IMG/VR virus record: IMGVR_UViG_3300022868_000009
Span: 1-64,000 of that record
Strand: one strand, 5' to 3'
DNA length: 64,000 bases
Shown here: piece after piece, positions 5,467 through 42,900 of the stretch
Layout: the number at the start of each line of letters is the position of its first letter
Position numbering within the stretch: the first letter of the stretch is position 1
The notes under the pieces: model-generated
The model's database searches: none
Seen by the model: the letters and a program-made list of their open reading frames with translations, nothing else
Told to the model about the DNA's origin: nothing
Program-made: the position numbers and the translations under genes

Positions 5467-7902
5467 TTATATATTTTTAAGTCTGTTATAGAATCTGTCT
5501 AATTGATCTTCTGATAATGTCGTATTATCAACTAGTTGGTTCTTTTGTAGAACTTGTTTAGATTCTTTAATTAATGAATAGTTTTCCATTTTTCTACTAT
5601 TCCAAAAAGCTTCCATTTTTGCAGGAGTATCTAAATTAGGATACAATTTAGCAGTTAATAGTATGCTTTTCTTTTGGTCATTTTCTAGACCTTCATATAT
5701 TGGTTGTAAATCACTAGGGATATTTTCTACCAATACATCTTCAAAAGTTTTCTTAACACTTAGAGCATCAGTCATAGCTTTAAGGACTTGATTTTCTGAA
5801 TAATACGTGCTTTCGTTTAATGCAAGTTTTACTTTTTCTCTATCTTCGTCAGTTAAAGAATGATAAGATTTTTTATTTCTCTCTGTTAAGAATTGTAAAA
5901 AATGAGGCTCGCTATTTGCAGCTACTTTACGTTTTTTAGTTTCAGTAATAAGTTTGCCAATTTGAGATTTCAATGAATCTTCATTTTCTAATATTTTATC
6001 ACCAATAATGATGATTTTACTTTCGTGTATTTGTAATTCTTCTTGATTGTCTGTTAATTTTAAAAGTACCATACCATCGTTAGGCATGTAAGCCATAACT
6101 TCACCTGGTCTATCATTAAATGTTGCAGTCATTCCAGGAACAATTTGATCACTAACTACTTCTTGTCCTTGTACACTCACAGGTGCAACACCTATACTAG
6201 TATCAACTACTGGTGGTTGTGCTTGTACATCAATTTGAGTCTGTGCTTGAACTGGTTGTCCAAATTCATCAACTTCAGCTTGAGCTTGAGCATCTTGTTG
6301 AACAAATTCTTGTCCTTGTTGAGCTTGAGCTTGAACATCTTGTACTTGTGCATCAGCGTCTAATTGTATTGGACTTTGAATTGCATCAGTTGTTTGTGCT
6401 TGAGTTTGATTTTGATTTTGAACAAAATCAGTATCAGTATCATTATCATAAAATCTTTCTACATTTTGAACTTTCATATTAGGCATTTGAGCACCTTGAT
6501 TTTCGTTCAGTTCACCACTATTTAAATGTTCAACAGTTTGGTCTAAAGATTCTGCAAGATAATTTTGATATGCTTGAGTATCAGCAACATTTTCTGCAAT
6601 ATATTCACTATAAGCGATATTGTTATCTACATGTTCTGCAATATATTCACTATAAGCGATATTGTTATCTACATGTTCTGCTACATACTCAGTATAAGCG
6701 ATATTGTTATCTACATGTTCTGCAATATATTCTGCATATTCAATATTGTTATCTACATGTTCTGCAATATATTCTGCATAAGCAATATTTTTATCAAGAT
6801 TTTCTGCTACATATTCTGAATAGTCGATAGATTTTTCAATTGATTCAGCTAAATAATCTGAAAATTGAATATTCTTATCAACGTTCTCAGCGATATACTC
6901 AGAAAAGTCGATATTTTTGTCTAATGTTTCAGCGATGTATTCACTGTAATCAATAGTTTTGTCTAATTCTTCAGCAATGTATTCTGAATAGTTGATAGAC
7001 TTTTCTAATTCTTCTGCTAAATAGTCATTGTGTTTAACAAGACCTTCTGTTTTAGCTTTCAATGTTGAGTTTTCATTAACTACATGTTGAATCTGATCAG
7101 CTAAATAATCTAAATAGCCTGTTACAGAAATTTGTTGTTCGTTTAAATTTTCTAGAAGTTCAGCCATTTTCATCATTCTCTCAGGTTCTACTCCACCTTT
7201 GGCATTTTCTTCAAAGAAACGTTGAACTGATTCAATTTGTTCAGTTAAATAATTTGAATACTCAATCATTTGATTTTTTGTTACAAATTCGTTGTTGTTA
7301 TTCATTTCTAAGAAATCATTAAATTTTGACGAATCTGATAAGTCATAAATACGAAAGTTTGAACTTTCATTAAAACCTAAAGACTCGTTGAGTGATTTTA
7401 ATTCCATTTTTGCAGAACTAAAACCTGGATCTGCAACGGCATCATATGTAAAAAGTTTCTTTATAGCCACCGTACCATTACTTTCAGTAATACCAGCCGC
7501 TCTAGAGCTAACAAAAATAGGGCAATTGTCATCGACTAATGCTTTAGCCTCTTTGCCCCAATGTGTATTAAGTAACCTAATTGTACCTTCTACTCTATTC
7601 GCTTGTGGATTATGAAAAATTGATTCCAATGTATGTGAAACTCTTGCAAGTGATGTATCGAACACGTCAGGATGATCGAATTCACCATATATGACACCTA
7701 AGTTTTTTTTACGTTCATTAAGTTCGCCTAAATGCGGTAAAAACTTATCAGAAGTATAAATTCTTTCATTACGATTAACTACATCAAATTCGGTAAAAAT
7801 ACCTCCTAAAATATATTCTTTCTTTTGAGAACTTTGCTCCTGAATGAGTTTTAAACCATCAGTCGAATTTTCAATGATCAAAACCGGTTTGTTTCCATTC
7901 AT
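5467..7902 (-). CDS. gp21: Prohead core protease (gp21-like) fused to a scaffold/core domain
   Basis: N-terminal GEFDHPD and FVSSRAAG catalytic motifs, YDAVADPGFSSA; followed by acidic 14-aa repeats, a Q-rich linker and a helical C-terminus. Confidence 0.9.
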   Translation of the reverse strand: MNGNKPVLIIENSTDGLKLIQEQSSQKKEYILGGIFTEFDVVNRNERIYTSDKFLPHLGELNERKKNLGVIYGEFDHPDVFDTSLARVSHTLESIFHNPQANRVEGTIRLLNTHWGKEAKALVDDNCPIFVSSRAAGITESNGTVAIKKLFTYDAVADPGFSSAKMELKSLNESLGFNESSNFRIYDLSDSSKFNDFLEMNNNNEFVTKNQMIEYSNYLTEQIESVQRFFEENAKGGVEPERMMKMAELLENLNEQQISVTGYLDYLADQIQHVVNENSTLKAKTEGLVKHNDYLAEELEKSINYSEYIAEELDKTIDYSEYIAETLDKNIDFSEYIAENVDKNIQFSDYLAESIEKSIDYSEYVAENLDKNIAYAEYIAEHVDNNIEYAEYIAEHVDNNIAYTEYVAEHVDNNIAYSEYIAEHVDNNIAYSEYIAENVADTQAYQNYLAESLDQTVEHLNSGELNENQGAQMPNMKVQNVERFYDNDTDTDFVQNQNQTQAQTTDAIQSPIQLDADAQVQDVQAQAQQGQEFVQQDAQAQAEVDEFGQPVQAQTQIDVQAQPPVVDTSIGVAPVSVQGQEVVSDQIVPGMTATFNDRPGEVMAYMPNDGMVLLKLTDNQEELQIHESKIIIIGDKILENEDSLKSQIGKLITETKKRKVAANSEPHFLQFLTERNKKSYHSLTDEDREKVKLALNESTYYSENQVLKAMTDALSVKKTFEDVLVENIPSDLQPIYEGLENDQKKSILLTAKLYPNLDTPAKMEAFWNSRKMENYSLIKESKQVLQKNQLVDNTTLSEDQLDRFYNRLKNI
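6541..7032 (-). repeat. About 12 tandem 42-bp (14-aa) repeats, consensus EYIAEHVDNNIAYS
   Basis: Visible directly in protein and DNA (e.g. gcaatatattcactataagcgatattgttatctacatgttct repeated). Confidence 0.9.
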
Positions 7903-7921
7903 AAGATTTTTCTTTTTTTAC

Positions 7922-7929
7922 TATATATT
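7922..7929 (-). promoter_or_regulatory. Putative late promoter AATATATA upstream of the protease-scaffold gene
   Basis: Recurrent octamer about 20 nt upstream of the start codon. Confidence 0.6.
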
Positions 7930-8009
7930 CAATCAAAATAACCTGTTTTTTCCATTTTTGGTGTCATTTATGGTCACATTTTTAAATATATAAATTAAAA
8001 ATATAATTC

Positions 8010-9752
8010 ATGTTTTTGACAAAAAAATTAGCAGTTACAATAAACCCTTCAAATATCAAACATTTTAAAAAATATTTTGATAATATAGAAGTTAAAGATG
8101 AAATCGTTGTCAACATTGATCAATTAAATAAAGGTAGTCAGTTCATAATTAATGTTCAATGTGATCAATGTGGTCTTAAAAAAGAACTCAAATACAAAAA
8201 TTATTTAGGTTATGGTTACATTAATGGTGATTATTTATGTAGATCATGTAAATTAAAGAAAAATAATCAAGAAAAATATGGGGTTGACAACGTTTTTCAG
8301 CTTGAGGAGACAAAAGAAAAATCTAGAAAAACATGCATGAAAAAATATGGTGTTGAATACATTTCCCAATCAAATAAAACAAAAGATAAAATAAAACAAA
8401 TAAGCATAGAAAAATATGGTGTTAATCATTTTACACAAAATGATAATATTAAAAACAAACAAAAGCAAACAAATTTAGAAAAATATGGTGTAGAAAATCC
8501 ATCACAATCCATTGAAATTAAGAAAAAGAAAGAAAATAATTGGTTAATTAAAAATGATGAAGAGAAGGAATCAATTCTTAAAAAAAGAATTAAAACGAAT
8601 CAAATTAAATATAATTCTGATCATATTTTCACAAATGATTTTTTTAAAGAAAGAATAAAACAAACGAATTTAGAAAAATATGGTGTAGAAAACCCATCAT
8701 TAAACAAGAAAGTATCACAAAAAATAATATCTTCTTTAAAAGAAACACTTTTATCTAAACAATTTGAAAACATTGATAATTTAATAAATGTTCAAGGAGA
8801 TATTTTTTTAATTAAATGTGATGCATGTGGTGATGAATTTAAAATATTAAATAGTCTTTTTTATAAAAGAAGAGAATCAAACACATTAATTTGTACAAAT
8901 TGTAACCCTGTGTCTAAAAATGTATCTGGCAAAGAAATACAATTGTTGAATTTTATTAAAGACAATTACAATGGGACAATTATTGAAAACAGCAAAAAAA
9001 TAATATCACCACTAGAATTAGATATTTATCTTCCAGATTTAAATTTAGCATTTGAATTCAATGGTATCTATTGGCATTGTGAATTATACAAAGATAATAA
9101 CTATCATTCAAACAAGACTAAAATGTGCAATAATAAAAATATAAATCTTTTTCACATCTTTGAAGATGATTGGGTTTATAAACAAGATATAGTAAAATCT
9201 ATGATTATTAACAAAATAAATAGAACAACAAATAGAATATATGCACGAAAAACAACATTAAAAATAATAACAAATAATACATTAATTAAAGAATTTTTAA
9301 ATAGTAATCATATACAAGGTTATGTTGGTTCTTTTATTAAACTGGGATTATTTTATAATGATGATATTGTAAGTTTAATGACATTTAAAAATGTTAAAGA
9401 TGGTTATGAATTAAACAGGTTTTGTAATAAATTAAACACAAATGTAATTGGTGGTGCAAGTAAATTATTTAAATATTTTACAAAAAATTACTCATTTGAT
9501 AAGATAATATCATTCTCGAATAATGATTACTCAGAAGGAAATCTATATAAAACACTAAATTTTAGATTAGATAAAAAAATAAAACCGGATTATTCTTACA
9601 TTAAGAATGATAAAAGGGAACATAAATTTAATTTCAGGAAGAAAAAATTATCTCAAAATTTCAACATTTTAAATAAAACAGAACATGAAATATGTTTTGA
9701 AAATAATATTTATAGAATATATGACAGCGGCAAATTAAAATGGGTTTATTAA
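8010..9752 (+). CDS. Hef-like putative homing endonuclease
   Basis: Same architecture as 1788-3440 (EKYGV repeats, ELDIYLPDLNLAFEFNGIYWH, GGASKLFKYF); lies between the portal and protease genes on the opposite strand. Confidence 0.75.
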   Translation: MFLTKKLAVTINPSNIKHFKKYFDNIEVKDEIVVNIDQLNKGSQFIINVQCDQCGLKKELKYKNYLGYGYINGDYLCRSCKLKKNNQEKYGVDNVFQLEETKEKSRKTCMKKYGVEYISQSNKTKDKIKQISIEKYGVNHFTQNDNIKNKQKQTNLEKYGVENPSQSIEIKKKKENNWLIKNDEEKESILKKRIKTNQIKYNSDHIFTNDFFKERIKQTNLEKYGVENPSLNKKVSQKIISSLKETLLSKQFENIDNLINVQGDIFLIKCDACGDEFKILNSLFYKRRESNTLICTNCNPVSKNVSGKEIQLLNFIKDNYNGTIIENSKKIISPLELDIYLPDLNLAFEFNGIYWHCELYKDNNYHSNKTKMCNNKNINLFHIFEDDWVYKQDIVKSMIINKINRTTNRIYARKTTLKIITNNTLIKEFLNSNHIQGYVGSFIKLGLFYNDDIVSLMTFKNVKDGYELNRFCNKLNTNVIGGASKLFKYFTKNYSFDKIISFSNNDYSEGNLYKTLNFRLDKKIKPDYSYIKNDKREHKFNFRKKKLSQNFNILNKTEHEICFENNIYRIYDSGKLKWVY

Positions 9753-34553: not shown

Positions 34554-35232
34554 TTAATGTAAAAGTTCAATCTTACCCTTAATTATATTTTTATAACTCG
34601 ATTTACTATTAGTAATATGATCAACAATTATACCAGTTTTTAAATTATAAGTCCTTCTTCTATTTGACCTAGATCTTAAACCTATTTGTTCATTTCTACC
34701 ATTAGAATAAGACTCATTATATTCTTTATTAAATTTATCTTGTAATCTTTTCTTTAATTCTTTCCACGCACCAGATTCATTTTTATGTTGATTTCTACCA
34801 TCAACTCTTACTTGAATATTAGTAGGGATATGTTTTAAAATAACACAACTCATAGTTCTATTTCTATGTTGACCGCCCGGTCCAGAACCCATAGTATATA
34901 TTACTTCTACATCATTTTTATCAATATTAACTGAAATATCTTGTTTTTCATCTAAAACTGCAACAGAAACTGTTGATGTGTGCATTCTACCTTTTGATTC
35001 TGTTGGTGGTACACGTTGCCATTTATGATTACCTATTTCATTTGAGAAGAATTCTTTTACACCATCACCGCTAAAGACATAAATCAACTAAACCTTCTCT
35101 TTCATTAAGAGAAATTAGTTTAAATCCCTTTAACTTTAATGTTTTTAAGTAAATGTTTTTCATATCTTGTACTAGAAGTTTAGCATCCTCGCCACCTTCT
35201 TGATCTCTGATTTCTATAATAATTTTTTCCAT
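34554..35232 (-). CDS. prfA: Class I peptide chain release factor, RF1-type (PxT), lacking domain 1; two frames joined by a +1 frameshift at CTT TAG C (35076-35070); about 225 aa
   Basis: Frame 0 from ATG 35232: MEKIIIEIRDQEGGEDAKLLVQDMKNIY...LVDLCL*; +1 frame: SGDG...QRVPPTESKGRMHTS...GSGPGGQHRN...RRRTYN...DH. Together they match RF1 domains 2-4 continuously. Confidence 0.85.
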
Positions 35233-35921: not shown

Positions 35922-35981
35922 TATAATAATTATATTTTCTTCTATATATTAAAATACATATTGATAAATTTTATAATTATG

Positions 35982-36054
35982 TAACGCAGATCAGAATCGA
36001 ACTGACAGCCTTTGGGATATGATTCCAATGCTCTACCTATTGAGCTACTGCGTT
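35982..36054 (-). tRNA. tRNA-Met/Ile2 (CAT)
   Basis: Cloverleaf AACGCAG / GCTC-GAGC D stem / TTGGA-ATCATAT-CCCAA / GTCAG TTCGATT CTGAT. Confidence 0.75.
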
Positions 36055-36385
36055 ATTTATTTTTAATTCTATCTAATTTAATCTTTCGATCAATTCTTAT
36101 AATTTTCTTTTTAACTTCTTCATCTTTAAAATTTGGATGTAAATATAAATTACACATAACATGGAAAACATCTGGATTTATATCACCATTTTCATCTAAA
36201 CATGGTTTTAATATATCCATCATTATATATGTTCTAATAGATGTATAATTATTTTGAAATTCATAACGTTTACAAATAAAATCTATATAACTATCAACAT
36301 CAACAGGTATTATTTTATTCTCAAATTCGTCAATTAAAACATCAATTATATATTCATCATTAAAACCATTACTATCATCCGTCAT
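36053..36385 (-). CDS. Hypothetical protein (RKIKLDRI C-terminus)
   Basis: 110-aa ORF. Confidence 0.6.
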   Translation of the reverse strand: MTDDSNGFNDEYIIDVLIDEFENKIIPVDVDSYIDFICKRYEFQNNYTSIRTYIMMDILKPCLDENGDINPDVFHVMCNLYLHPNFKDEEVKKKIIRIDRKIKLDRIKNK

Positions 36386-36567
36386 CCTTTACTCTACTAA
36401 TTTAACTTTTCTTTGATACTGGTATTAAAATTCTACTATTTTCCATATAACTTATATTTCAAATAATATAATATGTTTAAAAATTTTGTATTTAAAAAGA
36501 ACCGTATCAATAATAAATTAATACGGTTTCAGTAGAGGGTAACTAATATAATTGGTAAGATAAAAAA

Positions 36568-36759
36568 CTATTCTTGTTCCTTTTTAGCTTTAAGGTTACC
36601 CTTAGTTTTTCCTTTTACTTCTTTTTCTTTCTTGTCTGGTCTAACTAATTCTTTCCAGATGTTTTTAGGACAATAATTATATCCGTTTGCTAACTTTTCA
36701 TAAACTTCCTTTTCTTTTACTCTAATTGGAAGGTCGTCTCCGAGTCTCATTGTTTTCAT
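36568..36759 (-). CDS. Small basic hypothetical protein
   Basis: 63-aa ORF. Confidence 0.55.
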   Translation of the reverse strand: MKTMRLGDDLPIRVKEKEVYEKLANGYNYCPKNIWKELVRPDKKEKEVKGKTKGNLKAKKEQE

Positions 36760-36767
36760 AAGCTAAT

Positions 36768-37277
36768 TTAATTAATTTTTATAATATTTGATTTTTCTAT
36801 TTTTATTGATTTTTCTATTTTTAATTTTTCTATTGGTTTTTCTTTTTTAATATTATTAAAATCTATAACCTTCAATGTTATAGTATCTGTTTTTTGTTTA
36901 AATGTAAATTCATGCTCACCTTTACCATAATGGTTTATTTTTACAAATAAATTAAAAACTGTATTTTCATTAATTTGTCTAGATTCATTTACTTTAAAAA
37001 TATATTTAATTTGTTTACCATCAAACTCATATTCAGCATAAAAATCTTTGTTTTTAGAATCAAGATAAACTACAGGTTTAATTTCACCATCATATGCAAC
37101 AAATTCATTTATATCTGCAAATGGACCAACAATTGCAAAACCAACAATAAATATAACTATTGATGCAAATACACACCATGCTTTCGTTAAAGATTTTTTA
37201 GAAAATATTGATAATAAAATAAATATCATTAATAATCCAGGACTAATTATCCATGCAAGTGTTAATAGTAAACTCAT
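36768..37277 (-). CDS. Hypothetical membrane protein
   Basis: 169-aa ORF with two N-terminal TM-like helices. Confidence 0.65.
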   Translation of the reverse strand: MSLLLTLAWIISPGLLMIFILLSIFSKKSLTKAWCVFASIVIFIVGFAIVGPFADINEFVAYDGEIKPVVYLDSKNKDFYAEYEFDGKQIKYIFKVNESRQINENTVFNLFVKINHYGKGEHEFTFKQKTDTITLKVIDFNNIKKEKPIEKLKIEKSIKIEKSNIIKIN

Positions 37278-37354
37278 TTTTTATATTTTTTTAATTTGTA
37301 TAAATATACAAAAATTTCAACTTAAAAAAAATTTTCGATTCTAAATTTTAATTG

Positions 37355-37427
37355 TAGGTATAGATGGATTTGAACCACCGACTTCTACTGTATAAGAGTA
37401 GCACTCTGACCCCTGAGTTATATACCC
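37355..37427 (-). tRNA. tRNA-Ile (TAT)
   Basis: GGGTATA / ACTC-GAGT / CTACT-CTTATAC-AGTAG / GGTGG TTCAAAT CCATC; close paralog of tRNA-Ile(GAT) at 39044. Confidence 0.85.
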
Positions 37428-37804
37428 ATGTCTAATCGTTTAAAAATTTTCCTTTCAATTGTTTCTATCATATAATTAGAATAAAAAAACAAATCGTACA
37501 TATTCTTTACCTCTTTTACATTATAATAATCACTATATTCATATATTTGATAAGTGATGCCTGTACCTGTTTTATAGGATGATGTATAACATATATATTC
37601 TTTATTTTTGTATTTTTTATATCTTACACTATGCAACGTGTTTATTATATAACCATTTTTAATATTTTTATAAACACTTTTAACATTTTTAATATTTTTA
37701 AAATCAAACTCATTAAATATACGTTGAAAAGCATGCTTAGGACTTAAAACCTTATTTTTTTCAAAATAATGTTCAAAACCAATTTGATATTTGTTTTTTC
37801 TCAT
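37418..37804 (-). CDS. Hypothetical protein
   Basis: 128-aa ORF; its 3' end overlaps the tRNA 5' end by 10 nt. Confidence 0.5.
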   Translation of the reverse strand: MRKNKYQIGFEHYFEKNKVLSPKHAFQRIFNEFDFKNIKNVKSVYKNIKNGYIINTLHSVRYKKYKNKEYICYTSSYKTGTGITYQIYEYSDYYNVKEVKNMYDLFFYSNYMIETIERKIFKRLDMGI

Positions 37805-37842
37805 ATTATTTTTGTATGTTTACGACAAAGTTTTCAATACTT

Positions 37843-37924
37843 AATATCTGATTCGAACCTACGTTGGGGCGTTTACCTCATCAGATTAACAGTCTGACAC
37901 CTTCGACCACTCGGACACAGATCA
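37843..37924 (-). tRNA. Degenerate tRNA (GTT anticodon, long variable arm, 3' T-stem strand missing)
   Basis: CCGAGTGGTCGAAGG D arm, TCAGA-CTGTTAA-TCTGA, GTAGG TTCGAAT then directly CAGAT with no CCTAC. Confidence 0.55.
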
Positions 37925-37932
37925 ATTTATTA

Positions 37933-38646
37933 TTACACAATTTCCGATTTTATTGCATTTGGTGGAATATTATCATAAGTATAATATGCTTCAGAATCTT
38001 CGTTAAACTTTGGATCTTTATGTAATTTAATATTATTAATCATCACTTTCATATCTATTTCTAGAATAATATATTCTTCCTTAGAATGAAATTCTTTTTC
38101 TTCTAAGTAATTTTTAGATATTTTTTCATTTCCAAATAAATAAATTCTTTCTGGATGTTGTTCAATAACGTTTTTAGTTTTAGGAACTATACCTTGTTTT
38201 TTAATTTTATCTAAATTTTTTTTATTTGTAACATGATATAATTTTTCTGGTACACCAACTTCAGAATCAAATCTTTTATTTAAATAAACTATGAAATCTT
38301 CATCTTTTTTCCAAACATGTGTTGAAATACTTGTTTTTTTACCATCCATATACTGGTTTGAAATATTATAACCTAAATTATTTACCAAAATCAATAAATC
38401 AGAATAAAATTCTTTTAATCTTTCTCCATAAAAATTAAGTTCAATTCTATCTTTAAGAATATATAATTTGACACTACCTTTTACTTTATGTTTTTTAAGC
38501 AAATCGTCGATTTTTTGAACTGATATATCATAATCAATACTTTTAATAAGACCCTCTTTAATTAAATTATAATTGAAAGACTCTAACATTTTATTATTAA
38601 AGTCATGATGATATCCACAAAATTCAAAATATTTTTTCATATTCAT
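37933..38646 (-). CDS. ADP-ribosyltransferase-fold protein (Tpt1/KptA-like H-motif) with CTS-like start
   Basis: KLYHVT...I.KQGI.PK...RIYLF...ILEI....YTYDNIPPNAI; paralog of 54608-55393. Confidence 0.6.
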   Translation of the reverse strand: MNMKKYFEFCGYHHDFNNKMLESFNYNLIKEGLIKSIDYDISVQKIDDLLKKHKVKGSVKLYILKDRIELNFYGERLKEFYSDLLILVNNLGYNISNQYMDGKKTSISTHVWKKDEDFIVYLNKRFDSEVGVPEKLYHVTNKKNLDKIKKQGIVPKTKNVIEQHPERIYLFGNEKISKNYLEEKEFHSKEEYIILEIDMKVMINNIKLHKDPKFNEDSEAYYTYDNIPPNAIKSEIV

Positions 38647-38677
38647 TATATATTAAATTCATTTTTTTGTTTATTTG

Positions 38678-38750
38678 AGGGGAAACTAGGACTCGAACCT
38701 AGGACACCTTGATTAACAATCAAGTACTCTACCAACTGAGTTATATCCCC
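38678..38750 (-). tRNA. tRNA-Asn (GTT)
   Basis: GGGGATA / ACTC-GAGT / CTTGA-TTGTTAA-TCAAG / CTAGG TTCGAGT CCTAG. Confidence 0.85.
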
Positions 38751-38831
38751 TGGTATAGGGCTAAAACCACTACCCTATCTTTGAAAGTTTACAAATCTAC
38801 CTGTGGTTAGGTCATAGAACTGCTCCTACAG

Positions 38832-38903
38832 TAGTCCGTAGGGGAATCGAACCCCTCTCTCTGGGCTGAAAACCCAACGTCCTGCGCAATAGACGAACGG
38901 ACC
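38832..38903 (-). tRNA. tRNA-Glu (TTC)
   Basis: GGTCCGT / TTGGG-TTTTCAG-CCCAG / AGGGG TTCGATT CCCCT. Confidence 0.85.
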
Positions 38904-38915
38904 ATAAATTACATG

Positions 38916-38997
38916 TAGCGGGTCTAGGAGTCGAACCTAGTATCTCGTGGGTTATGAGCCCAGAATGATTTATAATTATCCATTTCACTCCCCCGCA
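38916..38997 (-). tRNA. tRNA-fMet (CAT), initiator-like, enlarged D loop
   Basis: 1:72 T-T mismatch, GGG/CCC at the base of the anticodon stem, CTCATAA loop, CTAGG TTCGACT CCTAG. Confidence 0.75.
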
Positions 38998-39043
38998 ATA
39001 TAATTTCAATCTTTAAAAATTTATCAATATGTCAAAGAACTTG

Positions 39044-39117
39044 TGGGTATAGATGGATTCGAACCATCGACCTCTACCGTATCAGAGTAGCACTCTAACC
39101 AACTGAGCTATACACCC
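39044..39117 (-). tRNA. tRNA-Ile (GAT)
   Basis: GGGTGTA / GCTC-GAGT / CTACT-CTGATAC-GGTAG / GATGG TTCGAAT CCATC. Confidence 0.9.
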
Positions 39118-39118
39118 G

Positions 39119-39836
39119 TTATAATTTCAACCATTTTCTTATTGAATTATCACTAACACCATATTTTTTACCTACCTGTACATAATTACTTTCTTGAATT
39201 TCTTTCAATAAAATTTCTTTATTAGGTCTTTCTACTTTTCTGCTTTTTTCATGATAACATTCTACACATTGTTTTGATTGTCTTCATTTCATTACCACAT
39301 TCACAATAGTATTTTTTCTTTTCTTTTTTTTGATATTTTTGATATTTCTCTTTTTTTAAATCAGATTTATTAGATTTTGTTTTACTTTTACCACAATATG
39401 TGCTTGTCTGGCTATGACAATTTGGACATAATAATCTAAGATTTTCTAATCTATTATCTAAGTTATCACCATTTATATGGTCCAAATGTAAAGATATAGA
39501 TTTTCTTTTCCATTCATTTATTCCACATTCATCACATTTATATTCTAAAATATCTTCTTCAATAAGACGTTTTTTCAAAGAACCATTATTAGTATAAGTT
39601 GAATTTTCAACTAATATTTCATCCAACGAATAAGTTTTTGAAAAATTCTTAAAATTTTCACCTGTATTCCAACCTTGTCCTGTAAAATGTGATTTATCAA
39701 TATTATATAATTTAACATATTTTTTAATTGTTTTATAATTTCCACCTACTGGTCTTATGTCTAATTTTCTACAAACATCAGCAATTGAAAATGATTCTTT
39801 TACTATTTTCTCTAAATTATCTTTTTCATATTTCAT
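39119..39836 (-). pseudogene. HNH homing endonuclease, frameshifted before its C-terminal Zn/HTH domain
   Basis: LHLDHINGDNLDNRLENLRLLCPNCH in ORF 39249-39836; a shifted frame continues SKQCVECYHEKSRKVERP...KYGVSDNSIRKWLKL* to 39119, matching the C-termini of the other two HNH genes. Confidence 0.75.
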
Positions 39837-39931
39837 ATTAATATTTATTTTATATTATATATTAAAACTTAAAAGCTATATTTTTTAATGTAAATATACG
39901 TTTGATATATTTATATTAACTAAAAATAGTG

Positions 39932-40016
39932 TACCTGGAATGGGACTCGAACCCATACGACCATAAAGATCAATAGATTTTAAGTCTATCTCGGCTACCA
40001 ATTACGACACCCAGGC
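39932..40016 (-). tRNA. tRNA-Leu (TAA)
   Basis: GCCTGGG / ATAGA-CTTAAAA-TCTAT / long variable arm / ATGGG TTCGAGT CCCAT. Confidence 0.9.
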
Positions 40017-40235
40017 ATTTGTGTCTTATTTTATCATTATTAACGAATCCTTTTATAATTCATTCTTTCTTTTTTACCTTTTCTTTCTCTAATCAAATCG
40101 TGTTCAATTTCAATAGCGAATTTTAAGTATAACCACATATCTGAATTAGGTCTTTGTTTACTCATACCTAATCTATATTTAATTATTTTATTTCTAGTTT
40201 TTTTATTCATTTCTTTCCTTTCTTATATTTATTTG

Positions 40236-40315
40236 TACCTCTGGAGAGACTCGAACTCTCACACCTTTCGGCACTGGTGCCTAAAACCAGCGTGTCTACA
40301 TTCCACCACAGAGGC
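40236..40315 (-). tRNA. tRNA-Leu (TAG)
   Basis: GCCTCTG / CTGGT-TTTAGGC-ACCAG / GCCGAAAGGT variable arm / GAGAG TTCGAGT CTCTC. Confidence 0.9.
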
Positions 40316-40324
40316 ATATTTAAT

Positions 40325-40354
40325 AAAAAAGCCAGTTCTTTATTTTGAACTGGC
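40325..40354 (-). terminator. Intrinsic terminator of putative attenuator 1
   Basis: GCCAGTTC-AAAATAAA-GAACTGGC-TTTTTT, ending 10 nt upstream of tRNA-Leu(TAG). Confidence 0.75.
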
Positions 40355-40376
40355 TCTATAATTTAACAATAGTATA

Positions 40377-40442
40377 TTAGAGCCAGTCCCAGATTTCCTC
40401 TAGTAATAAATTAATAATCATATTTATATTTATATTCAACAT
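40377..40442 (-). CDS. Putative leader peptide 1 (MLNININMIINLLLEEIWDWL)
   Basis: 21-aa ORF with an A-rich upstream region; its last codons form the 5' strand of a 10-bp antiterminator. Confidence 0.6.
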   Translation of the reverse strand: MLNININMIINLLLEEIWDWL

Positions 40443-40474
40443 TTTTGTACTTTTTATTTTATTTTATTTTTTAG

Positions 40475-40546
40475 AGGCTCCGACTGAATTCGAATCAGTG
40501 TATCTAGTTTTGCAGACTAGTGCCTTAACCACTCGGCCACGGAGCC
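40475..40546 (-). tRNA. tRNA-Cys (GCA)
   Basis: GGCTCCG / CTAGT-CTGCAAA-ACTAG / U73 discriminator. Confidence 0.9.
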
Positions 40547-40557
40547 ATTATTTTTTG

Positions 40558-40652
40558 TGGGAGCCGAGGGACTCGAACCCCCCTACCGCAAAGTCCATTA
40601 CGACAATTTGTTGACGCGGATCGGTTTTACAGACCGATGCCGTTAGACTCCC
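40558..40652 (-). tRNA. Atypical tRNA-Tyr (GTA): no D arm, about 38-nt variable region
   Basis: Acceptor GGGAGTC/GGCTCCC plus A73; 8-nt linker TAACGGCA; TCGGT-CTGTAAA-ACCGA; GGGGG TTCGAGT CCCTC. Confidence 0.65.
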
Positions 40653-40658
40653 AAACTT

Positions 40659-41354
40659 TTACGACTTATTTTTTATTGTATTTTCATAAGTTTTTAACCA
40701 TTTTCTTATAGCATTATCACTAACACCATATTTTCTTCCAGTAGCAGAATAACCTACTCTTTTTATTTCTATTTTTAATTTTTCATAAGAAGGTCTTTCA
40801 ACTTTCCTGTTGTTTTTTGCTGAACATTTCACACACATTTTTGAATTTTTATGTATTTCATTACCACATTCACAATAATTTTTTTCTTTTTTCTTTTTTC
40901 TATTTTTACCAGCATGTGTATCTAATGTTGCATTACAATTAGGACATACAATCCTCAAATTTTCTATTTTATTATCATCATAAACACCATTCTTGTGATC
41001 CAAAATTAAACTCATTTTTTTACCATTCCATATTTCATCTTGTCCACATATTTCACATTTTCTTTCTTTTAAACCTTCATCATATAATCTTTCTTTTAAA
41101 TGTGTTCTACTAAATGTAGAATTTTCAACTAATATTTTTTCTAATGGTGTCTTATTTTTAGTTGATAAATATTTAATTTTATCATAACATTTAGTAAAAT
41201 GTGTTATATCCAAATCATACAACTCAATATATTTTTTCAATGTTTTAGGGTTACCACCAGCATTTCTTATTCCTAATTTTTCTAAACACTCTTTTTGTGT
41301 TTTAGATGTCTTAACTATTTCTTCAAGATTTTCTTTTGTCCATTTTAATTTCAT
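40659..41354 (-). CDS. HNH homing endonuclease with C-terminal Zn-ribbon/HTH
   Basis: LILDHKNGVYDDNKIENLRIVCPNCN, YCECG, KYGVSDNAIRKW. Confidence 0.85.
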   Translation of the reverse strand: MKLKWTKENLEEIVKTSKTQKECLEKLGIRNAGGNPKTLKKYIELYDLDITHFTKCYDKIKYLSTKNKTPLEKILVENSTFSRTHLKERLYDEGLKERKCEICGQDEIWNGKKMSLILDHKNGVYDDNKIENLRIVCPNCNATLDTHAGKNRKKKKEKNYCECGNEIHKNSKMCVKCSAKNNRKVERPSYEKLKIEIKRVGYSATGRKYGVSDNAIRKWLKTYENTIKNKS

Positions 41355-41414
41355 AAAAAAAAGTTTTCTTTTATATATTAAATCTCGAACCTCGTTTTTT
41401 CATTTTTTCATTTG

Positions 41415-41485
41415 TTGTCCCCAAAGGATTTAAACCCTTACCACAACCTTCAAAAGGTTATGTGCTATCATTACACCAGAGGACA
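41415..41485 (-). tRNA. tRNA-Gln (TTG)
   Basis: TGTCCTC / GTGT-GCAC / TAACC-TTTTGAA-GGTTG / AAGGG TTTAAAT CCTTT. Confidence 0.8.
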
Positions 41486-41590: not shown

Positions 41591-42286
41591 CTAAATCTTT
41601 TCGTATTGTTTTTTCCATTTCCTAATAGCATTATCACTAACACCATACTTTCTTCCTACACCACAATAACCTAATTCAACTATTTCTTTTATCAATTCTT
41701 TATATGTTGGTCTTTCTATTTTTCTCTGACTCTTAGATACACATTCTCTACATTTAATAGCAGATTTAGTAATCTCATTTCCACATTCACAATAATATTT
41801 CTTTTTCTCCGTAACGTAATTATATTTACTATTTCCAATATTCTTACCACCGTGTGTTTCTAAACCAGCATTACAATTTGGACAAACAATTCTAAGATTT
41901 TCTATTCTATTATCATTATTTACACCGTTTTTATGATCTAATATTAAACTGATTTTTACATCATTCCATTCTTCACCTTGATTACACAACTCACATTTTC
42001 TTTCTTTTAACCCTTCTTTGTATAATCTATCTTTTAAATTAGTTGTATAAGTATACGTCGAATTTTCTACTAATATTTCTTTTGTTTTTATTTTAGTAAA
42101 ATTACCACCATTACTATGAAACTTAAAATGTGTTATATCTAAATTATAAGTTTTAATATATTTTTTAATAGTTTGCCTATTTCCATAATATGGTTTTAAT
42201 CCTAAATTTCTAGCAACATCTGATAAATTACCAGATTCAGAAACTATTTTACTAAAATACTCTTTTTCATATCTATTTGTTTTCAT
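41591..42286 (-). CDS. HNH homing endonuclease with C-terminal Zn-ribbon/HTH
   Basis: LILDHKNGVNNDNRIENLRIVCPNCN, YYCECG, KYGVSDNAIRKW. Confidence 0.85.
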   Translation of the reverse strand: MKTNRYEKEYFSKIVSESGNLSDVARNLGLKPYYGNRQTIKKYIKTYNLDITHFKFHSNGGNFTKIKTKEILVENSTYTYTTNLKDRLYKEGLKERKCELCNQGEEWNDVKISLILDHKNGVNNDNRIENLRIVCPNCNAGLETHGGKNIGNSKYNYVTEKKKYYCECGNEITKSAIKCRECVSKSQRKIERPTYKELIKEIVELGYCGVGRKYGVSDNAIRKWKKQYEKI

Positions 42287-42365
42287 AAGATTTTATTTTT
42301 ATATATTAAAATCTTCGAACCCAAATTCAAATTAACCAACATTTCAATGAACCTTTATTTTCTTG

Positions 42366-42442
42366 CGGTCCCTACGGGATTCGAACCCGTCTGTTTTTCC
42401 TGAGTGACAGTCAGGTGGCCACGCCAAGCAACCCCAGAGACC
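42366..42442 (-). tRNA. tRNA-Asp (GTC)
   Basis: GGTCTCT / CCTGA-CTGTCAC-TCAGG / ACGGG TTCGAAT CCCGT / G73. Confidence 0.9.
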
Positions 42443-42590
42443 TTTCTATTATTTCTCAATTCTCTTTAATTTACTCGCTATTCTACGATTATCTCTTTTT
42501 AAATCTCTTAATTCTCTTGAAAGAAGAGCTTTTAATATTCTTATTTTTATATTTCTTGTTCTCATTTTATTTTCATTTTTTATATTAATC

Positions 42591-42618
42591 AAAAAAACCA
42601 GTCATAATTGACTGGTTT
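42591..42618 (-). terminator. Intrinsic terminator of putative attenuator 2
   Basis: AAACCAGTC-AATTAT-GACTGG-TTTTTTT. Confidence 0.7.
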
Positions 42619-42640
42619 AGCATATCATACGGATATAACC

Positions 42641-42730
42641 TTACCAGTCGAAGATTTGATCCTCCTGTAAATAATTATCAAGACATATAATGTCAAGATT
42701 TTCTATTTGATATGTTAAATTGTTTATCAT
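42641..42730 (-). CDS. Putative leader peptide 2 (MINNLTYQIENLDIICLDNYLQEDQIFDW)
   Basis: 29-aa ORF downstream of AATATATA (42797-42804); its terminal GACTGGT is complementary to the terminator 5' arm. Confidence 0.55.
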   Translation of the reverse strand: MINNLTYQIENLDIICLDNYLQEDQIFDW

Positions 42731-42900
42731 CGAATTTATTTATTTAATTCTTTTATTAATTTAATACTCAAAAGTTTTAAATTTTTATATCATTTTTATA
42801 TATTTAACTCAATAAGTCAAATTTTACCATTTTTGAACTTTTGTTATACAAATATAAGGAAATTTCCGAATAAATTAAAATTTTAGAACAAATTTTAAAA

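Follow-up and report, generated by a model that had tools for sequence, protein, structure and literature searches.

Leader-peptide transcription attenuators control amino-acid operons in bacteria (trpL, hisL, pheL, leuL, thrL and ilvL, with the Trp, His, Leu and Thr leaders curated in Rfam). They combine a short ORF rich in regulatory codons, a Rho-independent terminator and a mutually exclusive antiterminator whose upstream strand is covered by a ribosome that reaches the end of the ORF. Leaders sampling more than one amino acid are known, such as thrL (Thr and Ile) and ilvL (Ile, Leu and Val), and in trp and his attenuation ribosome stalling depends on charged tRNA rather than on tRNA alone. 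The same logic operates on a gene of the translation apparatus in Escherichia coli, where the pheM leader controls the pheST operon encoding phenylalanyl-tRNA synthetase, whose output raises charging or decoding capacity for the codon that is sensed. In contrast, T-box riboswitches, typical of Firmicutes, bind uncharged tRNA directly through a specifier codon and the T-box sequence, without a ribosome, and control genes of the translation and aminoacylation apparatus through terminator/antiterminator competition. Large phages (T4, T5, crAss-like and jumbo phages) carry arrays of tRNA genes interspersed with homing endonuclease genes. Why phages carry these genes, and when they use them, is still debated, the main proposals being codon-usage compensation, replacement of degraded host tRNAs and escape from anticodon nucleases.

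In this study we examined two short ORFs that precede tRNA genes in a huge phage from salt-lake metagenomes, using the first 64 kb (hereafter the window) of the 344,634-bp virus record IMGVR_UViG_3300022868_000009, estimated to be about 48% complete. An initial annotation of the window, made from sequence alone, had proposed that the two ORFs belong to a repeated family of regulatory cassettes combining a leader, an antiterminator and a terminator. Our analyses support leader-peptide attenuation applied to phage tRNA arrays, in which each leader is spelled almost entirely with codons read by the tRNAs encoded downstream, so that the phage probably makes its own tRNAs only when ribosomes run short of them.

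Results

Organization of two leader units in the window

Everything that the initial annotation described at this locus is present, on the minus strand. In the first unit (unit A), a leader ORF of 29 codons plus TAA lies at 42730..42641 and encodes the peptide originally read, including its four Asp codons. The sequence GACTGGT at 42649..42643 (codons 28-29 plus the first base of the stop) is an exact copy of the 3' arm of the terminator and is consequently complementary to ACCAGTC at 42616..42610, in its 5' arm. The intrinsic terminator hairpin occupies 42618..42595, with the 5' arm at 42618..42609, the loop at 42608..42605, the 3' arm at 42604..42595 and a T-run ending at 42591, whereas the antiterminator stem encloses an inner hairpin at 42640..42619. 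A small basic ORF of 38 codons (42565..42449), without any Pfam family, separates the terminator from tRNA-Asp(GTC) at 42442..42365, the first gene of the array; relatives carry a different small gene of about 60 codons at the same place.

Between the two units (41485..40474) lie tRNA-Gln(TTG) at 41485..41414, an HNH endonuclease gene at 41354..40659, a tRNA-Tyr-like element at 40652..40559, which has a Tyr (GTA) anticodon loop but is not called by ARAGORN, and tRNA-Cys(GCA) at 40546..40474. In the second unit (unit B), the leader ORF ends at 40377 and comprises 21 codons from the ATG at 40442, or 14 from the ATG at 40421, plus TAA. Its antiterminator strand ACTGGCTCTA (40387..40378), which includes GACTGG, forms a perfect 10-bp match with TAGAGCCAGT (40358..40349). 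Intrinsic terminator B (40357..40322; hairpin 40357..40328 plus T-run) is followed directly by an array at 40315..35981 with tRNA-Leu(TAG), Leu(TAA), Ile(GAT), Glu(TTC), Asn(GTT), Ile(TAT) and Met(CAT), with protein genes, HNH endonuclease genes among those of the array as a whole, interspersed.

The box AATATATA at 42804..42797, singled out in the initial annotation, cannot be told apart from the A/T-rich background, as a scan for sigma-70-type promoters found no more sites than in shuffled sequence (105 against 95.5 +/- 8.2), and its role as a promoter is not supported. A better candidate is TATATTTG at 42856..42849, a -7 box of the Bacteroidota type (TAnnTTTG) followed by TATAAC. The same combination, there with a -33 TTG, sits about 50 nt upstream of the homologous-type leaders in two IMG/VR relatives (L070 and L072), although promoter function is only inferred.

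Folding of the alternative structures

The occurrence of these structures is more than chance. GACTGG occurs only 10 times on both strands of the window, and a simple terminator scan found 6 sites in 34-46 kb against 1.6 expected, both units being among them. Folded alone, the whole antiterminator of unit A (42652..42605) has -16.2 kcal/mol (z = -4.1, 0 of 200 shuffles folding as well) and its terminator -12.9 kcal/mol (z = -5.5). In unit B the 10-bp match lies within a 12-pair antiterminator stem of -18.7 kcal/mol (z = -5.1), against -16.4 kcal/mol (z = -6.0) for the terminator. The antiterminator is therefore the more stable fold when its upstream strand is free, which answers a folding criterion that had been set beforehand as a possible refutation. 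The duplex between the ORF end and the 5' arm of the terminator reaches -13.5 kcal/mol in unit A, against -4.1 +/- 2.3 for 500 random windows of the genome, and in both units none of the 500 was as strong; the mean over 19 units, including those described below, was z = -3.1.

To assess how these folds depend on the ribosome, each nascent leader was folded up to the terminator loop while masking the bases a ribosome would cover, from the 5' end to 13 nt past the first base of the A-site codon. In all five units of this genome (see below) the 5' arm of the terminator is held in an antiterminator (-15.6 to -18.7 kcal/mol) while the modelled ribosome is on early and middle codons. The last positions at which it survives are codons <=23-24 in unit A, <=7-8 of the short form of unit B, <=23-24 in the Pro..Ala unit, <=15-17 in the His/Trp/Phe unit and <=14 in the Lys/Ser unit. 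It is lost once the ribosome reaches the last codons or the stop, when only the terminator can form. In unit A the antiterminator arm stays free with the A-site on codons 2-24 (42727..42659; only partly at codon 24). The cognate codons of the units lie inside this sensing window. Units A and B and the Lys/Ser unit are two-hairpin switches, open when untranslated, while the other two units also have a 1:2-type hairpin that sequesters the antiterminator strand in untranslated RNA and closes them. The naked full-length RNA nevertheless folds with the terminator in its minimum-energy structure, and the switch would therefore depend on kinetics and on transcription-translation coupling in an unidentified host.

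Leader codons match the tRNAs encoded downstream

The initial annotation described both leaders as I/N-rich, and that of unit A as having four Asp codons, but missed that the codons mirror the whole set of tRNAs encoded downstream, which is what explains the element. Unit B, read from the upstream ATG, consists only of L, N, I, M and E before its W-D-W-L end, and its sensing codons 2-15 are 14/14 cognate by strict wobble to the Leu, Leu, Ile, Glu, Asn, Ile and Met tRNAs behind it. Unit A has those residues plus D, Q, C and Y, and Asp, Gln and Cys tRNAs plus the Tyr-like element lie between A and B. Of its 23 sensing residues, 20 (18 by strict wobble) are read by tRNAs of the downstream array, against 10 and 6 in the other two frames. 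Three codons (Thr, Tyr, Tyr) have no confidently called tRNA in the array, Tyr being covered only if the Tyr-like element works.

Three more units of the same layout were found in this genome outside the window, at 166121..165953 (-), with leader core AVVVRTGTPTRPVAGT before tRNA Pro, Thr, Gly, Arg, Val, Val and Ala; at 113451..113594 (+), with core FKHNSSSFHKWFS before His, Trp, Phe, Lys, Lys, Ser and Ser; and at 115020..115142 (+), with core SKSKKNS before Lys, Lys, Ser and Ser. In a cross-table of leaders against arrays the clear enrichments lie on the diagonal (P = 9e-5, 2.5e-3, 6e-5 and 1e-4, plus 0.075 for the weakest unit), whereas the two nominal off-diagonal values (P about 0.03) are nested cases, where the later array lies downstream of the earlier leader. 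The enrichment in the Lys/Ser unit is modest (P = 0.013-0.075). The genome has 35 tRNA genes in several arrays, and about a third of them (the 313-322 kb set and both tRNA(CTA) genes) have no such unit. A short ORF at about 316500, before Glu, Tyr, Pro, Phe and Arg tRNAs, contains E, Y, R and F but has no terminator and was not counted. Similarly, an exact-repeat screen of 84 terminator-like hairpins in the genome returned, apart from units A and B, a single hairpin (300858..300822) with a G/C-containing 7-nt match, which was discarded because it lacks an ORF and a tRNA context.

Units in related phages and control lineages

Related and control records were screened with a pipeline blind to composition, which takes tRNAs called by ARAGORN, a folded terminator within 320 nt upstream, and any ATG ORF of 8-70 codons ending no more than 75 nt before that terminator, followed by the ribosome-mask folds. 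Units were found in five related huge-phage records. LR756504 (636 kb) has units before Thr/Asn/Arg/Ile/Met, Arg/Ile/Met, Glu/Ala/Ile/Val/Gly, His/Phe, Asp/Tyr/Gln, Tyr/Gln/Lys, Lys (with a LysRS-like gene) and Leu/Ser/Cys arrays, each leader core being made of just those residues. Seven more units were identified in LR745206 (635 kb) and further units in three IMG/VR contigs reached through the phage release-factor gene. Examples across these records are core TTIIRNMNNNINRT before Thr, Asn, Thr, Arg, Arg, Ile and Met; LSLCLSLSL before Leu, Ser and Cys; QQIQQQQ before three Gln tRNAs; and KKKK before Lys tRNAs plus the LysRS-like gene. In contrast, only weak, non-cognate candidates and no cognate-enriched unit were found in LR756511 (60 tRNAs) and in a crAss-like Bacteroides phage (23 tRNAs), no cognate-enriched unit in another IMG/VR contig (G007, 40 tRNAs) or in two Bacteroidota MAGs (30 tRNA loci), and no convincing unit in two Firmicutes phages with big arrays, Enterococcus phage Bop and Bacillus phage Thrax1, where the only candidate was weak and uninformative. 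Some relatives (LR756511 and the one IMG/VR contig) thus also have no such unit.

Over all 33 structural candidates, obvious false ones included, 333 of 526 sensing-window residues are cognate to a downstream tRNA, against 129.8 expected, and 100,000 random re-pairings of leaders and arrays gave a mean of 125.7 (sd 17.1) and a maximum of 206. Twenty-three candidates have a binomial P < 0.01, although some units are homologous between records and hence not all are independent. The match is specific to the reading frame: in 19 good units the ORF frame holds 206 cognate residues, against 68 and 55 in the other frames, which are full of stops, and the ORF frame is best in 19 of 19. Of the 206, 179 are cognate by strict wobble; an extended-wobble count was set aside because it wrongly extends U34 into split codon boxes. 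Codon choice follows the anticodons present, with AGA and CGC used where both Arg(TCT) and Arg(ACG) follow, and TTA, CTA, AGT, TCG and TGT where Leu(TAA), Leu(TAG), Ser(GCT), Ser(TGA) and Cys(GCA) follow. The idea that codon order in the leader mirrors gene order in the array held only loosely for one unit and was dropped.

These results bear on the possibility that the units are ordinary terminators or insulators between transcription units, with short ORFs and upstream complementarity arising by chance in A/T-rich DNA. A/T-rich genomes are indeed full of short ORFs, and expression remains inferred, but the permutation, frame, shuffle and co-variation tests all reject chance. Furthermore, a terminator placed directly in front of tRNA genes with no promoter after it (6-41 nt gaps in four of the five units in this genome) would silence them if it were constitutive. 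We consider this explanation very unlikely.

Conservation of homologous leaders

Three contigs share a leader whose first 19 codons differ only by synonymous changes, including a Ser TCG/AGT switch that needs three base changes, while the untranslated flank and the 3' part of the unit diverge freely. In one of them the terminator has been replaced and the in-ORF strand has changed to match it (GGTCAAGGT with ..CCTTGACC against GTCGGGT with ACCCGAC). This evidence comes from other units, since unit A has no close homologue: the neighbouring 191-aa protein has no relatives in IMG/VR, and a pattern scan for the ORF end plus terminator gave one chance hit inside a gene of an unrelated phage. Contigs from four salt-lake or marine DNA runs showed unit A unchanged apart from two single-base insertions upstream (42786 and 42792), with no informative co-variation.

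Conservation of codons 1-19 at the amino-acid level could also suggest that the ORFs encode functional micro-proteins and that the RNA structures only end their mRNAs. However, the peptides share no sequence between units, their composition follows the downstream tRNAs and their C-terminal parts drift with the RNA arms, making this the least likely of the alternatives considered.

The C-terminal motif and the release factor

For the I-[FW]-D-W ending shared by units A and B, the initial annotation had offered three readings, namely an arrest motif, a by-product of the RNA switch, or a sensor of termination speed that might be linked to the phage release factor. A by-product of RNA pairing fits best. 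The motif is shared only by units A and B, which also share the CCAGT/ACTGG RNA core, whereas the other three units in this genome and all units in relatives end in unrelated peptides; in homologous units the peptide at this position changes together with the terminator arm; and the non-cognate F-D-W (unit A) and W-D-W (unit B) residues are encoded by or beside the antiterminator strand itself. Neither an arrest motif nor a termination-speed sensor tied to the release factor is supported, and nothing in the data needs the latter. In favour of the latter, the stop codon of both window units lies in or next to the antiterminator arm, where a waiting ribosome would favour termination, and a release factor gene of RF1 type (35232..34554; Pfam RF-1 and PCRF, motif P-P-T) lies about 0.75 kb beyond the last tRNA gene of the array. 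That gene is split over two frames and lacks the N-terminal part, nothing connects it to the units beyond proximity, most leaders end in TAA, and a sensor of release-factor activity would not explain the match between leaders and tRNAs, so that we regard the link as very doubtful. Despite the two tRNA(CTA) genes, the 344 kb show no sign of stop-codon reassignment, as reading TAG as sense raises open-frame coverage only from 0.72 to 0.735, like the TGA control at 0.738.

Phage context and putative host

The phage has a G+C content of about 25%, occurs in many salt-lake metagenome DNA runs, and has as distant relatives 'uncultured phage' genomes of about 635 kb. No leader has a Shine-Dalgarno sequence (the region upstream of leader A is A/T-rich), TAnnTTTG boxes lie upstream of leaders, and a window protein has a 47%-identical full-length homologue in a Bacteroidales MAG. 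Together these point to a Bacteroidota host, which is an inference.

Discussion

The observation made in the initial annotation was thus confirmed in full, whereas its interpretation was only partly supported, in that the layout of the unit, its membership of a repeated family and the by-product reading of the peptide end held, but the arrest motif, the release-factor link and the promoter box did not. We propose, with good though not complete confidence, that units A and B are leader-peptide transcription attenuators placed in front of a phage tRNA array, belonging to a set of at least five in this huge phage, with more in related phages. In this view, transcription, probably by the host RNA polymerase from a Bacteroidota-type promoter, enters a short ORF whose first 12-24 codons are almost all read by the tRNAs encoded downstream. 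If these codons are decoded quickly, the ribosome would reach the last codons or the TAA stop and cover the segment (GACTGGT in unit A) that would otherwise pair with the 5' arm of the terminator, whose hairpin then forms, and transcription would stop before the tRNA genes. If decoding is slow because matching aminoacyl-tRNAs are scarce, the lagging ribosome would leave this segment free to pair with the 5' arm as soon as it is made, and the polymerase would read on into the tRNA genes. The result would be a negative feedback in which phage tRNAs are made when decoding capacity for their own codons is short.

The anatomy of the units, the two mutually exclusive folds and their dependence on the stretch covered by a ribosome, the frame-specific match between leader codons and downstream tRNAs, and the coding-type conservation and co-variation of the arms in homologous units were all shown here in silico. 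In contrast, translation of the ORFs, read-through responding to charged-tRNA supply, the direction and dynamic range of regulation, the promoter, the use of host polymerase and the physiological signal are inferred, no RNA run being listed for this phage. The trigger itself is a matter of speculation and might be a codon-usage mismatch, loss of host tRNA during infection or tRNA-cleaving host defences, for which the Lys-only unit with its LysRS-like gene is suggestive.

The same structures might instead report general translation speed or amino-acid starvation, as in classical attenuation, the array being switched on whenever translation slows. Since ribosomes sense charged tRNA, amino-acid starvation would also open the switch, and extra tRNA would not help then; moreover, every leader begins with generic Ile/Asn/Lys/Thr codons and several sample 5-8 amino acids at once. 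However, codon sets are tailored array by array, cross-pairings do not match, leaders of a single amino acid precede single-species arrays (Gln only, Lys only), and codon choice follows the anticodons present, so that this alternative appears unlikely, albeit less so than the others.

A broader possibility, which we consider probable, is that a lineage of huge phages, probably infecting Bacteroidota, runs a modular decoding-supply regulon. Each tRNA sub-array, sometimes with an aminoacyl-tRNA synthetase gene, would sit behind its own leader, whose codons list exactly the tRNAs behind it, and the phage would measure codon by codon where host decoding capacity falls short and top up only that. 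This would be the first case of leader-peptide attenuation controlling tRNA genes, and the first regulatory logic described for phage tRNA arrays. The units suggest that at least one phage lineage does not express its tRNAs blindly but switches them on by demand, through a sensor written in plain sequence, which offers a direct experimental handle on the conditions that open each switch. They would extend leader-peptide attenuation to RNA genes of the translation apparatus and to viruses. In addition, they offer an annotation rule, since leader composition predicts the content of the array behind it and can flag tRNA-like genes missed by standard finders, such as the Tyr-like element, and they provide compact natural parts for codon-specific sensors in Bacteroidota.

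The arrays described here resemble the tRNA gene clusters of other large phages in being interspersed with homing endonuclease genes, but in the phages sampled from outside this lineage (crAss-like, Enterococcus and Bacillus) no convincing or cognate-enriched leader/terminator unit was found. Full-text literature searches likewise found no report of leader-peptide attenuation of tRNA genes or of phage tRNA arrays, although subscription journals were not covered and a precedent cannot be excluded. With T-box riboswitches the units share terminator/antiterminator competition reporting the state of a specific tRNA and targets in the translation apparatus, but they are ORF- and frame-dependent, and the Rfam model gave no T-box match at E <= 1 in 34-44 kb of the window. 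Nor do they belong to a curated leader family at the sequence level: unit B weakly resembles Thr_leader (RF00506) over its full length, the only match to known riboswitch or leader families, but below threshold, with 28.5 bits (E = 0.048) against a gathering score of 55, unit A has no hit at E <= 1, and the remaining units C, D and E have none at E <= 0.1.

In mechanism, the units work like attenuators of the trpL, hisL, thrL and ilvL type. They have a short ORF with start and stop codons, regulatory codons related to the function of the downstream genes, a Rho-independent terminator between leader and genes, and an antiterminator whose formation depends, in silico, on ribosome position; the units at 166121 and 113451 even have the 1:2-type hairpin. 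They differ in that the element is viral, that the genes under proposed control are tRNA genes, in one relative together with a LysRS-like gene, rather than biosynthetic enzymes, and that one leader samples up to 7-8 amino acids, matching the content of its array. In logic they are closest to T-boxes and to pheM-pheST, in which leader-peptide attenuation also acts on the translation apparatus, but pheM senses one amino acid and controls a synthetase in a cellular genome, whereas here whole tRNA arrays would be controlled.

tRNA-like elements and other genes within the array

A tRNA-Tyr-like element was identified at window positions 40559-40652 on the minus strand, with an acceptor stem, a T arm and a CTGTAAA anticodon loop (GTA) like that of the tRNA-Tyr genes of LR756504, but with no D arm and a variable region of about 38 nt. 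The element was not called by ARAGORN, and the Rfam tRNA-Sec model gave a score of 27 bits, below threshold. Leader A, the short ORF preceding the array, contains two Tyr codons, which would fit if this RNA works. A second tRNA-like remnant was found at 37848-37924 (minus strand; Rfam tRNA 25.5 bits, below the 29-bit threshold), in which a class-II-like D region and a GTT-like anticodon loop are present although the acceptor and T stems do not close, and which is probably a decayed tRNA gene.

The small basic ORF at 42449-42565 (minus strand), located behind terminator A, the terminator that follows leader A, starts with ATGAGAACAA (M-R-T), the same start as many leaders in the relatives. It has no terminator of its own and no match to the next tRNA, and might represent either a decayed leader or a small protein, while relatives carry an unrelated gene of about 60 codons at this position. 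Three paralogous HNH homing-endonuclease genes (39249-39836, 40659-41354 and 41591-42286, all on the minus strand) lie between the tRNA genes. Metagenome contigs show joints that skip about 0.9-1.16 kb between 40730 and 42145, as expected if these insertions vary or recombine in the population. A 237-aa ORF inside the array (37933-38646, minus strand) gave a weak, sub-threshold hit to the RNA 2'-phosphotransferase (Tpt1/KptA) family (E = 7e-4), and may be an RNA-repair function among the tRNA genes.

Release factor and tRNA(CTA) genes

A phage release-factor gene of RF1 type (QRVPPTES, GGQ; Pfam RF-1 and PCRF) is found at window positions 34554-35232 on the minus strand, where it is split over two overlapping frames and lacks the N-terminal domain. 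Its homologues in IMG/VR relatives (49-60% identity) lie next to tRNA(CTA) genes. Two tRNAs with anticodon CTA also occur in the 344-kb record examined here, at genome positions 112614 and 140629. Reading TAG as sense hardly changed open-frame coverage across the whole record (0.72 to 0.735, like the TGA control), and no reassignment is visible in this part of the genome.

Outside the window, open-frame coverage is very low (about 0.2) at genome positions 300000-340000, a region holding a second, partly redundant tRNA set (Lys, Glu, Tyr, Pro, Phe, Arg, Gln, Met, Leu) without leader units.

Similarity to known RNA and protein families

Also outside the window, the plus strand at genome positions 112548-113016 (1549-2017 of the extracted locus L105) gave a full-length match to GOLLD RNA (RF02032: 93.9 bits, E = 4e-24), which is nevertheless below the gathering score of 150. 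An amber-suppressor-type tRNA(CTA) is embedded in this match, which lies just upstream of the His/Trp/Phe leader unit. In LR756504.1 (positions 7049-8185 of locus L002, taken from that record), a lysine-tRNA ligase-like gene (NCBIfam E = 4e-107) lies inside the Lys tRNA array, behind the K-K-K-K leader, and is shorter than cellular LysRS.
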